Positions 2,879 to 12,971 of a DNA stretch of 12,971 nt are shown piece by piece. The notes under the pieces were generated by a model, which was given only the letters and a program-made list of their open reading frames with translations, ran no database searches and was not told the origin of the DNA. Numbering within the stretch: the stretch's first letter is position 1; the number at the start of each line of letters is the position of its first letter. The translations under genes were made by a program, and so were the position numbers. This DNA is from Octopus sinensis (Eukaryota), in contig NW_021826897.1 of NCBI RefSeq assembly GCF_006345805.1, positions 1 to 12,971 of the forward strand, written 5' to 3'.

Positions 2879-4422
2879 GGATCTTTTCCTTTTGAACGGC
2901 AGTTTTCGAATTTTAACCAATCAATGGCCTCTATTGAGCTAAAATCATTTGCTGCATCTAAAACTGAGACAACATCCTGTCACTAACCCTAACCCTAAAT
3001 TTTAGCCCTTCGTTTTTTTTTTTCTTAATTGTTACGCGTGTGTCTAAAATTATTCGTTTTGTTTTTGTCTTGAGTTTTTGCTTTCGTTTTTTTTTTCTTA
3101 ATTGTTAAATTTAAGGATAACAATTAAGAAAAAAAAAACGAAAGGCTAAAACGAAAGCAAAAACTCAAAACAAAAACAAAACGAATAATTTTAGACACAC
3201 GCATAACAATTAAATCAATTTAACAATTAAGAAAAAAAAACGGAAGTCTAAACTTAAGGGTTAGGGTTAGGGACAGGATGTTGTCTCAGTTTTAGATGCA
3301 GCAACTGATTTTAGCTCAATAGAGGCCATTGATTGGTTAAAATTCAAAAAAATTAAACTACGTTAAACTTACAATTTTCTCAAGAAAGCCAAGAGGGATC
3401 TTTTCCTTTTGAACGGCAGTTTTCGAATTTTAACCATCAATGGCCTCTATTGAGCTAAAATCATTTGCTGCATCTAAAACTGAGACAACATCCTGTCACT
3501 AACCCTAACCTAAATTTTAGCCCTTCGTTTTTTTTTTTCTTATTGTTACGCGTGTGTCTAAAATTATTCGTTTTGTTTTTGTCTTGAGTTTTTTGCTTTC
3601 GTTTTTTTTTTCTTAATTGTTAAATTTAAGGATAACAATTAAGAAAAAAAAAACGAAAGGCTAAAACGAAGCAAAAACTCAAAACAAAACAAAACGAATA
3701 ATTTTAGACACACGCATAACAATTAAATCAATTTAACAATTAAGAAAAAAAAACGGAAGTCTAAACTTAAGGGTTAGGGTTAGGGACAGGATGTTGTCTC
3801 AGTTTTAGATGCAGCAACTGATTTTAGCTCAATAGAGGCCATTGATTGGTTAAAATTCAAAAAAATTAAACTACGTTAAACTTACAATTTTCTCAAGAAA
3901 GCCAAGAGGGATCTTTTCCTTTTGAACGGCAGTTTTCGAATTTTAACCATCAATGGCCTCTATTGAGCTAAAATCATTTGCTGCATCTAAAACTGAGACA
4001 ACATCCTGTCACTAACCCTAACCTAAATTTTAGCCCTTCGTTTTTTTTTTTCTTATTGTTACGCGTGTGTCTAAAATTATTCGTTTTGTTTTTGTCTTGA
4101 GTTTTTTGCTTTCGTTTTTTTTTTCTTAATTGTTAAATTTAAGGATAACAATTAAGAAAAAAAAAACGAAAGGCTAAAACGAAGCAAAAACTCAAAACAA
4201 AACAAAACGAATAATTTTAGACACACGCATAACAATTAAATCAATTTAACAATTAAGAAAAAAAAAACGGAAGTCTAAACTTAAGGGTTAGGGTTAGGGA
4301 CAGGATGTTGTCTCAGTTTTAGATGCAGCAACTGATTTTAGCTCAATAGAGGCCATTGATTGGTTAAAATTCAAAAAAATTAAACTACGTTAAACTTACA
4401 ATTTTCTCAAGAAAGCCAAGAG
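2879..4422 (+). repeat. Three tandem copies of the element A left portion (517, 513 and 514 bp), each containing a ~438-bp palindrome
   Basis: Units start at 2879, 3396 and 3909, each with the TIR, and each ends in GCCAAGAG. In unit 1 the palindrome spans 2908-3345 with a 10-nt loop at 3108-3117. The units differ only by homopolymer-length indels. Confidence 0.95.
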
Positions 4423-5176
4423 GGATCTTTTCCTTTTGAACGGCACATGTCAACACAATTTCTAAACTTCGTATACTGGTAGAATGTGCTTATAAAACAT
4501 CATTTTTTCTTGGCTTTATTGAGAAAATTCTATAGTTTGTAAGATATTTCGAGCATTTCGGCAATTTTAACCAATCGCTGACCTCCATTTGGGGTGAAAA
4601 CATTCCGTGCTGTATGAATATCTCCCTCGTTTAAGAAATAGATTGGGTTTATTTACATTTGCGAAGAAAAAAAAGACACCCTTCCCCCACCCCTAAATCT
4701 AAAATAGATTGAAATGCAATAGATCGATACTAGGGTTATAATTATGGGTGACATTTTCATTTGACACCGCTAGAAAAAAATCCCATTTTCCGTAGCGGTG
4801 TCGTATGAAATTGTCACCCATAATTATAACCCTAGTATCGATCTATTGCATTTCAATCTATTTTAGATTTAGGGTTAGGGGTGGGGGAAGGGTATCTTTT
4901 TTTCTTCGCAAATGTAAATAAACCCAATCTGTTTCTTAAACGAGGGACATATTCATACAGCACGGAATGTTTTCACCCCAAATGGAGGTCAGCGATTGGT
5001 TAAAATTGCCGAAATGCTTGAAATTAAAGTGGAAATATGTTACAACATATAGAATTTTCTCAATAAAGCCAAGAAAAATGATGTTTTATAAACACATTCT
5101 ACCAGTATACGAAGTTTAAAAGTGTTTAGTTAACTAGAAATTGTGTTGACATGTGCCGTTCAAAAGGAAAAGATCC
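4423..5176. mobile_element. Element B: 754-bp foldback MITE of the same TIR family, inserted into element A
   Basis: Near-perfect palindrome with a 20-nt loop at 4773-4792; termini GGATCTTTTCCTTTTGAACGGCACATGTC and its complement. The 8-bp TSD is GCCAAGAG (4415-4422) / GCCAACAG (5177-5184). Confidence 0.9.
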
Positions 5177-5184
5177 GCCAACAG

Positions 5185-5288
5185 AAAAAAATGTTTTATT
5201 TTGACACATTCTACCAGTATACGAAGTTTAAAAGTGTTTAGTTAAGTAGAAATTGTGTTGAAAACTGCCGTTCAAAAGGAAAAGATCC
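5185..5288. mobile_element. Right end of outer element A
   Basis: Resumes after the TSD of B, is homologous to the right subterminal region of B (CACATTCTACCAGTATACGAAGTTTAAAAGTGTTTAG), and ends in the A-type TIR AAAACTGCCGTTCAAAAGGAAAAGATCC. Confidence 0.85.
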
Positions 5289-5398
5289 TTATAGTTCTTC
5301 TGCCTTCTAAACAAAATTCCATTTTATCCACTTGTAAAGCAAATTGTATATGAAGTCGTTTAAAACCTGCCGAAGTCAACTTTGCTTTTCATTTTTTC

Positions 5399-5478
5399 GA
5401 TAATATAAAGTACCAGTCTGGTACTACTTGCCGCCTTCCCCCGAAATTGCTGGCCTTGTGCCAAAATTCGAAACTATT
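5399..5478 (+). mobile_element. Degenerate SINE 3' fragment
   Basis: GATAA..AAGTACCAGT...CCCCGAAATTGCTGGCCTTGTG parallels the SINE fragment at 8756-8870. Confidence 0.55.

Positions 5479-7821: not shown

Positions 7822-7869
<48 letters not shown>
7822..7869. repeat. (TG)n(TA)n microsatellite
   Basis: Direct reading; it abuts the left end of the hammerhead palindrome. Confidence 0.95.
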
Positions 7870-7870
<1 letters not shown>

Positions 7871-7900
7871 GCGAGAAAGAAGCAACAAGAATGGATAGTT

Positions 7901-7987
7901 TTTAGTACAATCGTTTCATACAAGGACAGGCTTTATTAAAAGTTGTAAAAATTACAGCATAAACGTGTCCCGTACTCATCAGCTAAA
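7901..7987 (-). ncRNA. Type I hammerhead ribozyme motif, left-arm copy
   Basis: The minus strand reads UUUAG-CUGAUGA-[stem II]-GAAAC-GAUU-GUA-CUAAA, giving a 5-bp stem I. Predicted cleavage lies between positions 7906 and 7905. Confidence 0.75.
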
Positions 7988-8344
7988 GTACATGTGAGTT
8001 CTCTAGACATCCTAGTGGTTGAGGCTATACTCATGAGTAATGTAGATAATTAAGTAACATAAACAATTTCCAAAGTTCATTAAAGTTCTTTAAAGATGAT
8101 GTACAGTCTTATCACAGAATTTTAAAAAAGTTTTAATAGCATCACAGAGAAGGTGACCTAATCCATATGTGCACTATGGATTAGGTCACCTCTGTGATGC
8201 TATTAAAACTTTTTTTAAATTCTGTGATAAGACTGTACATCATCTTTAAAGAACTTTAATGAACTTTGGAAATCTGTTTATGTTACTTAATTATCTACAT
8301 TACTTCATGAGTATACACTAGGATGTCTAGAGAACTCACATGTA

Positions 8345-8435
8345 TTTTAGCTGATGAGTACGGGACACGTTTATATGCTGTAATTTTTACAACTTTTAAT
8401 AAAGCCTGTCCTTGTATGAAACGATTGTACTAAAA
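8345..8435 (+). ncRNA. Type I hammerhead ribozyme motif, right-arm copy
   Basis: Stem I TTTTAG (8345-8350) / CTAAAA (8430-8435); core CTGATGA (8351-8357); stem II 8358-8417 (GTAC/GTAT, GGGACA/TGTCCT, TTTAT/ATAAA, TGTAA/TTACA); GAAA (8418-8421); 2-bp stem III with GATT loop; GUA triplet 8427-8429. Confidence 0.8.
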
Positions 8436-8585
8436 ACCTATCCATTCTTGTTGCTTCTTTCTCGCTTATAATCACCCCACATTACTGTATTGTTAAAACA
8501 GTATAGTTTTTTTTGGTGCATCTAAGTTAGGTACCATATTCAAGTAAATTCATTTAAATTAACTTGAATCTTTATTGCTTTTTGA

Positions 8586-8698
8586 GTATATATATATATA
8601 TATATGCACATTTATAATTTATATATATATATAAATATGCATAAATAAATATAGATATGGATACAGATATATACATATTTATTATACATAGACAATAT
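8586..8698. repeat. TA-rich low-complexity tract
   Basis: Direct reading. Confidence 0.85.
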
Positions 8699-8751
8699 AT
8701 GATTTATATGTGTGTGTTAAACAGTTCTGATATTCAGATATACATACATAT
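8699..8751. repeat. 53-bp inverted repeat, right copy (partner at 6928-6980)
   Basis: 52/53 match to the reverse complement of 6928-6980. Confidence 0.9.
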
Positions 8752-8870: not shown

Positions 8871-9035
8871 ATATGTATAAATATTTACAGATAAATATGT
8901 GTATACAAATATACACATGTATGCATATACATACATATATACACACACATGTATACATACATATATACACACACATGTATACATATACATACATACACAC
9001 ACATATATACATATACATACATGCACATATATATA
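8871..9035. repeat. Compound (TA)/(TACA)/(CA) microsatellite
   Basis: Direct reading. Confidence 0.9.
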
Positions 9036-9085
9036 TCACCCGTGATAGGTGAAAATCTGCGAAGTAAAAACAGTACTGTACTGTA
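9036..9085. mobile_element. Possible terminal fragment of a Tc1/mariner/pogo-type MITE
   Basis: Ends ...CTG followed by TA, the typical terminus plus TA target site; the body resembles a recalled octopus MITE end. Only one end is present. Confidence 0.35.
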
Positions 9086-10195: not shown

Positions 10196-10254
<59 letters not shown>

Positions 10255-10698
10255 ATATGTATATATATGTATATATCTATGTGGTATATATAATGTATAT
10301 ATAATATATGTGTATATATATGTTATATATATTGTGTATATATGTATATCTATTGGTATATATATGTATATATATACACATATATATACACATATATATG
10401 TATATATATACACATATATAATATATCACATATATTGTATATATACACATATATATATATACACATATATATGTATATATATACACATATTATATATACA
10501 CATAATATGTATATATATACACATATATATATATATACCTATATATGTATATATATACACATATATACATATATATATGTATACACATATATATATAAAT
10601 ATATATAATATATATATGATACATATACATATATATATATATTATAAATATATATATGTATACATATACATATATAGATAATATACACATAAATATAT
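10196..10698. repeat. ~500-bp (TA)n-based compound microsatellite
   Basis: Direct reading; it is the source of many spurious Y/I-rich ORFs. Confidence 0.95.
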
Positions 10699-10786
10699 GC
10701 CAGTATTATACGATGGATGTGTAATGTCAGTATGCATATTCGACAGAGTGTAAGTACCTTGAGAGAAAAGTTGGACTTCAGGAGCA
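10699..10786 (+). mobile_element. 88-bp RTE ORF fragment
   Basis: Ungapped match to 11097-11184 with 12 mismatches (86% identity). Confidence 0.85.
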
Positions 10787-11998
10787 ATAAACACTGAAAA
10801 TGTGCAGAGAACATCTTCCACTACATTCTAGGGAGAAAAACTAGAAGTAGTTGATAGCTTCCATTACCTAGGTGACCTAGTCAGTAGCAGGTGAGGGTGC
10901 GCTGAAAGTGTAGCTGCTAGATTAAAAATAGCCTGTACAAAGTTCAGAGAGCTCTTACCTCTGCTGGTGACAAAAGGCCTCTCGCTCAGAGTAAAATGTA
11001 TGACTGTATGGCGCATGTGTACGAACAGCCATGGTACACGGCAGTGAAACATGGGCCGTGACTGCTGTGGACATGCGTAAGCTCACAAGGAATGAAGCCA
11101 GCATGCTCCGATGGATGTGTAATGTGAGTGTGCATACTCGACTGAGTGTAAGTACCTTGAGAGTAAAGTTGGACCTAAGAAGCATCAGATGTGGTGTGCA
11201 AGAGAGACAACTGTGCTGGTATGGTCATGTGGCAAGAATGGATGAGGATAGCTGTGTGAAAAAGTGCCACACCCTAGCAGTTGCAGGAACCTGTGGAAGA
11301 GGTAGACCCAGGATGACCTGGGATGAGTTTTCGAACATTAGGCATCACCGAAGCAATGACTAGTGACCAAGACTTTTGGAAATATGCTGTGCTTGAGAAG
11401 ACTCAGCAAACCAAATGAGATCATAACATCGTGGTCTATACCAGGGGTGTAACCAGCCCACTTATGCATACCCTACCTTCATTGGACACTAAACTCTGTT
11501 TGCGAAGATCTGTTGAGGTAAGTGAAATCGAAATCAAATTCGATGACTGGCATCGGTTCTAGTAGAGCACTAAGAGCACCATCCGAGCGTGATCGTTACC
11601 AAAGCGGGTAACTGGCTTCTGTGCCGGTGAGACATAAAATGCACCATTAGAGAGTGATTGTTACCAGCGACGCCTTACTGGCACTTGTGCTGGTGGCATG
11701 TGAAGAAAAATTCGAGCGAGGTCGTTGCCAGTGCCACTGGACTGGCACCTATGCAGCTCGCACGTACATAACAACATTTGAGCGTGACCATTGCCAAAAC
11801 CGCCTGACAGGCACGCGTGCCGGTGGCATGTATAAACCACGTTCACACTCTCGAAGTGGTTGGCATTAGGAAAGGCATCAAGCTCTAAAAATTCTGCCAG
11901 AACAAGATTAGTGATTGGTGCAGCAATCTGGTTCACCAGTCCTCAGTCAAATTGTCCAACTCATGCTCCCATGTGGAAAGCGGATATTCAATTATGAT
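10787..11998 (+). mobile_element. 5'-truncated RTE-clade LINE (end of RT, C-terminal domain, repeat-containing 3' UTR)
   Basis: Encodes LEVVDSFHYLGD (last RT motif), HGSETWAV, WYGHVARM and GRGRPRMTWDE. The 3' UTR has four degenerate ~65-bp units and a decayed (TGA)-type tail. Confidence 0.85.
10841..11418 (+). pseudogene. Disrupted RTE ORF (reverse transcriptase C-terminal part)
   Basis: In-frame stop after LVSSR, a frameshift before MVHGSETW, and a frameshifting deletion after TWDE. The original end ...LGITEAMTSDQDFWKYAVLEKTQQTK* stops at 11416-11418. Confidence 0.8.
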
Positions 11999-12235: not shown

Positions 12236-12786
12236 AAACCTTCTTGTGACACTTGTGAAGGCCTGTTGAGGCAAGTGAAAATCAAATCAAATCAAAACAA
12301 ATCAAAATAGATGAACATCAATGGAATTTGTATCTTTGTGGTACCAGTGCCGGTGGCACACAAGATAACCATCCGACGTGGCCGTAGCCAGTACCGCATC
12401 GACTGCCTCCGTGCTGTGGGCACGTAACAAACACCATCCGATCGTGGCCGTTCGCCAGCCTCATCTGGCACCTGTGTCGGTGGCACATAAAACACCATCC
12501 GAGCGTGGCCGTCTGCCAGCCTCGTCTGGCACCTGTGTCGGTGGCACATAAAAAAAAAACACCATCCGAGCGTGGCTGTTCGCCAGCCTCGTCTGGCACC
12601 TGTGTCGGTGGCACATAAAATCACCCACTACACTCTCGGAGTGGTTGGCGTTAGGAAGGGCATCCAGCTGTAGAAACACTGCCAGATCTGACTGGCCTGG
12701 TGCAGCCTTCGGGCTCCCCAGACCCCAGTTGAACCGTCCAACCCATGCTAGCATGGAAAGCAGACGTTTGATGATGATGATGATGA
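12236..12786 (+). mobile_element. RTE-family 3' UTR copy with intact (TGA)n tail
   Basis: Homologous to 11490-11998 and ends CATGGAAAGCAGACGTT(TGA)6. Confidence 0.85.
12432..12620 (+). repeat. Three near-identical 61-67 bp tandem units inside the RTE 3' UTR
   Basis: Units start at 12432, 12493 and 12560 (CACCATCCGAGCGTGGCCGTTCGCCAGCCTCGTCTGGCACCTGTGTCGGTGGCACATAAAA); a more diverged unit lies upstream. Confidence 0.9.
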
Positions 12787-12971
12787 ATATGTACGTATAT
12801 ATATACATATTCATATATAAATATATACATATACATATATACACATATACAGATATATATACACATACATATATATGCATATATATATATATATATATAC
12901 ACATACATATTATATATACATAAATATACATATATATACATAAAAATACATATATATACATATACCTATAT
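12787..12971. repeat. (TA)/(TACA) compound microsatellite
   Basis: Direct reading; it runs to the window edge. Confidence 0.95.

Follow-up and report, generated by a model that had tools for sequence, protein, structure and literature searches.

A 595-bp foldback in the genome of Octopus sinensis is probably a genuine relic of a hammerhead-bearing retroelement of the Penelope-like element (PLE) type. It lies within a stretch of 12,971 nt, here called the window, and each of its arms carries a complete type I hammerhead ribozyme motif, which is far beyond chance expectation for a sequence of that length. The PLE origin itself we infer from the arrangement of the locus, in which two truncated copies stand head to head, with their ribozymes at the outer ends, beside a (TA)n tract. 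This setting matches both the published anatomy of PLE insertions and that of a PLE locus from a weevil; a link to PLEs had already been raised in the first-pass annotation of this DNA. Taken as a whole, the interpretation given there is partly supported, and the element is better explained as an inert insertion than as a functional RNA unit.

The foldback is a near-perfect palindrome at positions 7871-8465, running from G7871 to C8465, and the limits first proposed for it are borne out by the repeat finder, by the arm-versus-arm alignment and by the predicted fold. Alignment and fold define a left arm (7871-8167), which is a sense copy on the minus strand with its 3' end at 7871, and a right arm (8175-8465), which is a sense copy on the plus strand with its 3' end at 8465. 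The palindrome has no true spacer, as its centre, TGTGCAC (8168-8174), is only the 7-nt loop of the hairpin. The arms measure ~291-297 nt, have a GC content of ~31% and end at one template position to within ~1 nt, the outermost bases, C7870 and T8466, being unpaired. In the alignment, 2 substitutions and 6 indels (3, 1, 1, 8, 2 and 1 nt) separate them; thus, the 8-nt and 3-nt indels noted at first reading are both real, but they are accompanied by four further indels and the two substitutions. The 595-nt RNA folds into a single hairpin of -460.2 kcal/mol, compared to -118.8 +/- 6.1 kcal/mol in shuffled sequences. No direct repeat was detected within the element by the repeat finder, nor any further copy of the arm in the 12,971-nt window.

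A (TA)19 microsatellite at 7832-7869 (TRF: period 2, 19 copies, 100% matches) abuts the left end of the element, and the right end is followed by TATA at 8467-8470, the right flank reading T-TATA-ATCACCCC, unlike the left flank. The (TA)19 tract is the likely target of the insertion. A target-site duplication is unreadable here, because the insertion lies inside the TA repeat, and the one-sided tail of 30-40 nt that is typical of PLE insertions is absent from the foldback.

The two hammerheads lie one on each strand and read outward, in agreement with the first-pass annotation. The right copy is found at 8345-8435 on the plus strand (by descriptor, by full-length alignment to the Rfam model and by folding), and the left copy at 7988-7900 on the minus strand (by descriptor and sequence inspection). 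In the right copy, helix I is formed by 8345-8350 with 8430-8435 (6 bp), followed by the core CUGAUGA at 8351-8357. Helix II pairs 8358-8361 with 8414-8417 (4 bp) and then 8363-8367 with 8407-8411 (5 bp); the 39-nt loop at its end can itself fold further. The GAAA element is at 8418-8421, with G12-A14 at 8418-8420, and helix III (8421-8428) consists of A8421-U8428 and C8422-G8427, closed by a GAUU loop. Position H17 is A8429, so that the predicted cut falls after 8429, where the first-pass annotation had placed it. In the left copy, the core is at 7982-7976, helix II at 7975-7918, G12 at 7917 and helix III at 7914-7907, and H17 is 7906, after which cleavage is predicted. Helix I of this copy has just 5 bp (7987-7983 with 7905-7901), as its outermost pair is lost because U8345 is replaced by C at the matching position 7988. 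This U-to-C change is the sole difference between the arms that affects a helix; the others within the motif are a 2-nt indel in loop 2 and a 1-nt indel just 3' of helix I. From C3 to H17 the motif measures 79 nt. Each cut site lies 36 nt from its outer end, leaving beyond the ribozyme a 3' terminal segment at 8436-8465 on the plus strand, whose counterpart in the left copy is 7871-7899 on the minus strand.

Both arms therefore hold every element of a type I hammerhead in the right order, as was claimed at first reading: the core bases C3 U4 G5 A6 N7 G8 A9 and G12 A13 A14, the A15.1-U16.1 pair, an H17 other than G, and three helices of which helix I is open-ended. The canonical G10.1-C11.1 pair is not kept, as 10.1-11.1 is a G-U pair in both arms (G8358-U8417 in the right one). 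C11.1 followed by G12 would form a CpG, and its decay to TpG is conceivable, yet the T is common to both arms. Canonical contacts between loop 1 and loop 2 are not recognisable in the motif.

A descriptor asking for CUGANGA, a helix II of at least 4 bp, GAAA, A15.1-U16.1, H17 and a helix I of at least 4 bp matches these two sites only on the two strands of the 12,971 nt, and the CUGANGA heptamer itself occurs just six times in the whole window. The descriptor recovered its positive controls, namely the Poseidon_Ac unit junction (supplement of PMC11167929) and two fetched PLE loci. In a relaxed form it gave 0.0085 hits per window over 2000 dinucleotide shuffles, and none of the 2000 yielded a motif as good as the observed one, so that the descriptor search, a check which the first-pass annotation had proposed, came out clearly in favour of the motif. 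As the arms are copies of each other, the two motifs count as one independent event.

The Rfam search proposed alongside it gave a mixed answer. No hammerhead was reported for the whole window at the gathering threshold, nor for 751 nt at E<=10. When only 8335-8445 (111 nt) was searched, Hammerhead_1 (RF00163) was the top family and its alignment was full-length (model 1-45/45, window 8345-8435), with all core bases matched, but the score was 18.4 bits, under the gathering value of 34 (E = 0.028). This low score is mainly due to the 54-nt insertion in helix II and to the weak A-U and G-U helices. At E<=1, Rfam reported no hammerhead in the PLE loci of the weevil and the lamprey either, and the same loci hold clear minimal hammerheads according to the descriptor. 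Since genuine PLE hammerheads are missed by Rfam, a sub-threshold score is no evidence against the octopus motif.

Folding predictions point to a ribozyme that would depend on dimerisation. When the 92-nt domain is folded alone, helix I forms with pair probabilities of 0.56-0.79 and helix II with 0.88-0.99, whereas helix III, being just 2 bp long, reaches only 0.02; the minimum-free-energy structure of this domain is more stable than its hammerhead fold by 1.9 kcal/mol. The sequence of helix III and its loop, ACGAUUGU, pairs with itself over 8 bp, G-U pairs included, so that positions 15.2-16.2 and loop 3 are self-complementary and capable of joining two molecules. When two copies are folded together, the minimum-energy structure is a double hammerhead, in which two copies of ACGAUUGU make up an intermolecular helix III of 8 bp and helix I forms in trans; it reaches -33.2 kcal/mol, while the separate monomers amount to 2 x -13.2 kcal/mol. 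On this model the ribozyme depends on a dimer, owing to its 2-bp helix III and self-complementary tetraloop, and published hammerheads of PLEs and of the metazoan type I show the same design (PMC4209133, PMC7229834). RNA stability is not unusual, either over 111 nt (z = 0.20) or over the 297-nt arm (z = -0.08), and the latter value led to the rejection of the arm as a rod-like, retrozyme-type RNA.

Hammerheads have been found in the flanking repeats of all PLEs, and dual hammerheads on opposite strands, 100-700 bp apart, were described in Schistosoma and ascribed to truncated PLEs (Cervera & De la Pena 2014, PMC4209133). PLE insertions show heavy 5' truncation, often with an inverted truncated copy beside the 5' end; their hammerheads lie near the 3' ends, and (TA)n is among their preferred targets, where duplications are indiscernible (Craig et al. 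2021, PMC8557442). Biochemical work on a PLE protein (Frangieh et al. 2024, PMC11167929) has shown that it favours AT-rich DNA and cuts and extends both DNA strands, that reverse transcription starts internally, just downstream of the hammerhead, and that without the protein the hammerhead does not cleave. In Octopus vulgaris, 30 recently active Penelope families have been reported (PMC13282606).

Two control loci that encode RT-bearing PLE proteins were fetched, one from the weevil Sitophilus oryzae (L026) and one from a lamprey (L027). In the weevil locus the RT ORF spans 3001-5286, and two hammerheads face outward, at 5308-5342 on the plus strand and 2309-2275 on the minus strand, within inverted arms at 2219-2762 and 4854-5398. 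From the cut to the end of the element there are 56 nt; a one-sided 29-nt tail is present, and the element is flanked by a target duplication of ~12 nt (ATATTTTGTGTT; flanks 2177-2190 and 5399-5412). Its inverted truncated copy is accompanied by a partial upstream pseudo-LTR (2189-2276 / 2773-2860). The octopus foldback shares with this locus the head-to-head copies, the outward hammerheads and an end that lies a few tens of nucleotides past the cut (36 versus 56), and with PLE insertions in general the 5'-truncated inverted copies and the AT-rich, (TA)n target (PMC8557442, PMC11167929). Like the dual motifs of PMC4209133, the two ribozymes are on opposite strands and near the 3' ends of the inserted unit, and as in the PLE hammerheads of that study, the topology is of type I, helix III is very short and 15.2-16.2 plus the loop are self-complementary. 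Unlike the weevil locus and other PLE insertions, both copies are cut to ~297 nt at one point, giving a perfect palindrome, and there is no full-length copy, tail or readable target duplication as in the weevil, nor any RT/EN ORF or pseudo-LTR partner in the window.

The motif also departs from the minimal form of the PLE hammerhead. In PAc, the weevil and the lamprey, this form has 35 nt, a bulged base after A9, G10.1-C11.1, a short-looped helix II of 6-7 bp, and a helix III that lacks a loop; the PLE hammerheads of PMC4209133 have a helix II of 6-8 bp, also with a short loop. The octopus motif lacks both the bulge between A9 and 10.1 and the 6-8-bp helix II, and has instead G10.1-U11.1, a helix II of 4+5 bp with a 39-nt loop, and a 4-nt helix III loop. 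A helix III of 2 bp with a tetraloop is the invertebrate type of retrozyme hammerhead (Cervera & de la Pena 2020, PMC7229834), and the octopus helix III is nearer to this canonical type I form than to the minimal form of the PLEs examined.

The search for coding remnants supports the initial observation that no RT or endonuclease ORF is present. With 120 PLE proteins as queries, tblastn gave 0 hits at E<=1e-3 to a PLE RT or GIY-YIG remnant in the window, Pfam returned nothing relevant for ten ORF segments of the window, and the ORFs within the arms do not exceed 44 codons. A tRNA-derived SINE head was considered and rejected, as no tRNA-like gene was found. Relatives of the arms were sought in several collections. 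A metagenome scan with CTGATGAGTAC-gap-GTATGAAAC returned 23 loci, all of them chance matches by blastn; two scans of viral contigs gave nothing useful, and one scan of bacterial and archaeal genomes gave no relative. A protein search with the stop-to-stop translations of the arms, aimed at spurious gene calls on other copies, found none. No named cephalopod PLE was among the best 120 of 4581 hits to the Poseidon_Ac RT-EN query, these 120 being either assigned to other taxa or unnamed, and a locus of Argonauta hians, reached through a LINE match, shares only the LINE (70% identity) and holds no copy of the element.

The proposed model is that the template was an RNA whose type I hammerhead lay a short way upstream of the start of reverse transcription; this RNA would be either the end of a PLE pseudo-LTR or a non-autonomous, retrozyme-like derivative. 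This template would have been copied into a break within the (TA)n microsatellite in one PLE-mediated, target-primed event, with reverse transcription beginning ~36 nt downstream of the predicted cut; by analogy with PAc (PMC11167929) and the weevil PLE, the segment 8436-8465 may mark where this internal start took place. The product would be two head-to-head, 5'-truncated copies with their 3' ends outward, which accounts for one hammerhead per strand at 36 nt from each end. The palindrome itself could have arisen if the RT switched template to the cDNA that it was making, or if both cut strands served as primers and a jump took place; a switch step of this sort is suggested by the way in which the arms meet. 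As both arms stop at one template position, a single act is probable and two independent truncations are less likely. The arms would later have diverged by the 2 substitutions and 6 indels. The ribozymes of this locus are probably inert relics, because each strand holds one sense ribozyme in need of a partner and a read-through transcript would form a hairpin of ~290 bp.

An origin unrelated to PLEs has been weighed against this model, and we give it a small but real chance. The foldback would then be a MITE with a TA duplication, or an inverted duplication made by repair in a fragile (TA)n tract, and the hammerhead a chance match. The whole element is indeed one inverted repeat, and the TA and TATA at its ends fit a TA duplication if one terminal base has mutated, although a TA repeat makes such flanks uninformative and the outermost bases, C7870 and T8466, are mismatched. 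The lack of a PLE coding remnant in the window, the failure to find family copies in the metagenome, viral, bacterial/archaeal and protein collections scanned, the sub-threshold Rfam score and the G-U at 10.1-11.1 are also compatible with this origin, and the relaxed descriptor, at 0.0085 hits per 13 kb, would yield chance hits genome-wide. Moreover, the window contains a second spacerless foldback (~4423-5177) devoid of a hammerhead, so palindromes arise here by other routes too. What speaks against a chance match is that none of the 2000 shuffles gave an equally good motif, and that several further properties which lie outside the descriptor also fit, namely the self-complementarity of helix III with its loop, the textbook double hammerhead of the predicted dimer, and the placing of the motif 36 nt from the end and reading outward, as in real PLEs. 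The termini (CGCGAGAAAG...) resemble, to our knowledge, no known transposon end. An artefactual palindrome, created by fold-back during sequencing or assembly, is hardly credible. The absence of a spacer and the predominance of indels over substitutions between the arms (6 versus 2), as a noisy long-read consensus gives, would suit it; however, the 8-nt and 3-nt indels, which the first-pass annotation had already cited against an artefact, lie outside homopolymers, and the boundaries fall at the edge of a microsatellite, as those of a true insertion would. Within the window, each side is followed by a different, non-palindromic sequence and the contig end is not reached, so the palindrome is not a fold-back artefact that runs to the end.

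The first-pass annotation had further read the locus as a non-autonomous, purely RNA-level unit. In its strongest version, the locus would be a working non-LTR retrozyme, whose ~300-nt arm RNAs self-cleave, circularise and are mobilised in trans by PLEs, which we regard as improbable. Metazoan retrozymes measure ~150-450 bp with a GC content below 45-50% (PMC7229834), and a 2026 preprint derives them from PLE pseudo-LTRs (10.64898/2026.07.22.740005), a pedigree that favours such a unit here. The octopus arms resemble them as units of ~300 nt (~297 nt and ~31% GC, within the published range) that have low GC and no coding capacity, and the motif does so in its 6-bp helix I, its 4-bp proximal helix II and its 2-bp helix III with a tetraloop of the invertebrate type. 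It differs from the retrozyme ribozymes in its expanded helix II and in the lack of evident loop 1-loop 2 contacts, and the degree of self-pairing in the arm RNA is ordinary (z = -0.08), whereas the reported circular RNAs are highly self-paired. Retrozymes form head-to-tail tandems of 150-450-bp repeats, whereas this locus is an inverted pair only, and with one sense ribozyme per strand and no tandem, no RNA of unit length could be excised. A read-through transcript would, in addition, be trapped in the -460 kcal/mol hairpin. A unit working at the RNA level is therefore not favoured, on account of the single sense ribozyme per strand, the 2-bp helix III and the ~290-bp hairpin, and a truncated insertion that was dead on arrival is the simpler reading.

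It is conceivable, though we hold it unlikely, that the locus belongs to a family of non-autonomous, hammerhead-bearing retroelements of octopods that has yet to be described. The ribozyme of this family would be an unusual variant that has a long inserted hairpin in place of loop 2, together with G10.1-U11.1, and that retains activity as a dimer or in the presence of PLE protein, and the palindromic insertions would record template switches of the PLE RT. Small-RNA and A-to-I editing pathways are prominent in cephalopods, and if such a family exists, hairpin loci of this kind could yield long dsRNA that feeds into them. As for the PLE-type relic itself, no paper on hammerhead-bearing Penelope-type retroelements in octopus was found in the literature searched; confirmation would add cephalopods to the animals known to carry them. 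As spacerless palindromic insertions go, the foldback is a very clean one, and it could help to explain the inverted copies that arise from PLE reverse transcription. It does not involve a new kind of biology, as opposite-strand hammerhead pairs of truncated PLEs were already reported in 2014 (PMC4209133).

The rest of the window is AT-rich and crowded with microsatellites. Degenerate tracts of the (AT)n and (ATAC)n types, up to ~500 bp long, are found at 8587-8709, 8900-9036, 10196-10698 and 12796-12964, and the hammerhead foldback is located at the edge of one microsatellite tract of this kind. Two decayed fragments of LINE RT C-termini lie on the plus strand, at 2211-2627 and 10778-11406, the second of which includes an 86% direct repeat (10699-10786 / 11097-11184); their best named relatives are proteins of Argonauta hians (67%) and Octopus bimaculoides (77%), which points to an octopod as the source. 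There is also a tandem triplet of 61-67 bp at 12429-12625. A GC-richer repeat (...GGCACCTGTGTCGGTGGCACATAAAA...), which we take to resemble an abundant octopus SINE, has dispersed inverted copies at 9885-9987/11770-11872 and 10051-10141/11432-11522.

The second foldback (4423-5177, ~755 bp, centre at ~4782) has arms that are 90-92% complementary, the indels between them measuring 6, 12 and 18 nt. On the left, the arm enters an array of ~3.1 tandem copies of a 513-bp unit (2879-4494), which itself bears palindromes, and the right end of the foldback holds a 112-bp direct duplication (5074-5288). A ribozyme was sought in this foldback and in the tandem array and rejected, Rfam having returned only sub-threshold, generic miRNA-like hairpins. 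Telomere-like (CCCTAA)2 or (TTAGGG)2 runs occur at 2987, 3261, 3774, 4288 and 4869, once per 513-bp unit and also in the second foldback. Endonuclease-lacking PLEs carry reverse-complement telomeric stretches, which these runs recall; yet no ribozyme core adjoins them.

Two further observations come from the database searches. One PLE reverse transcriptase (P0120), 62% identical to the lizard query, is attributed in its source record to 'Escherichia coli' and is presumably eukaryotic contamination of a bacterial assembly. Two metagenome contigs, L002 (4981-5113) and L003 (195-327), each contain two CTGATGAG-type matches on the same strand, ~120 nt apart, possibly tandem hammerheads of microbes or phages that have no relation to the octopus window.
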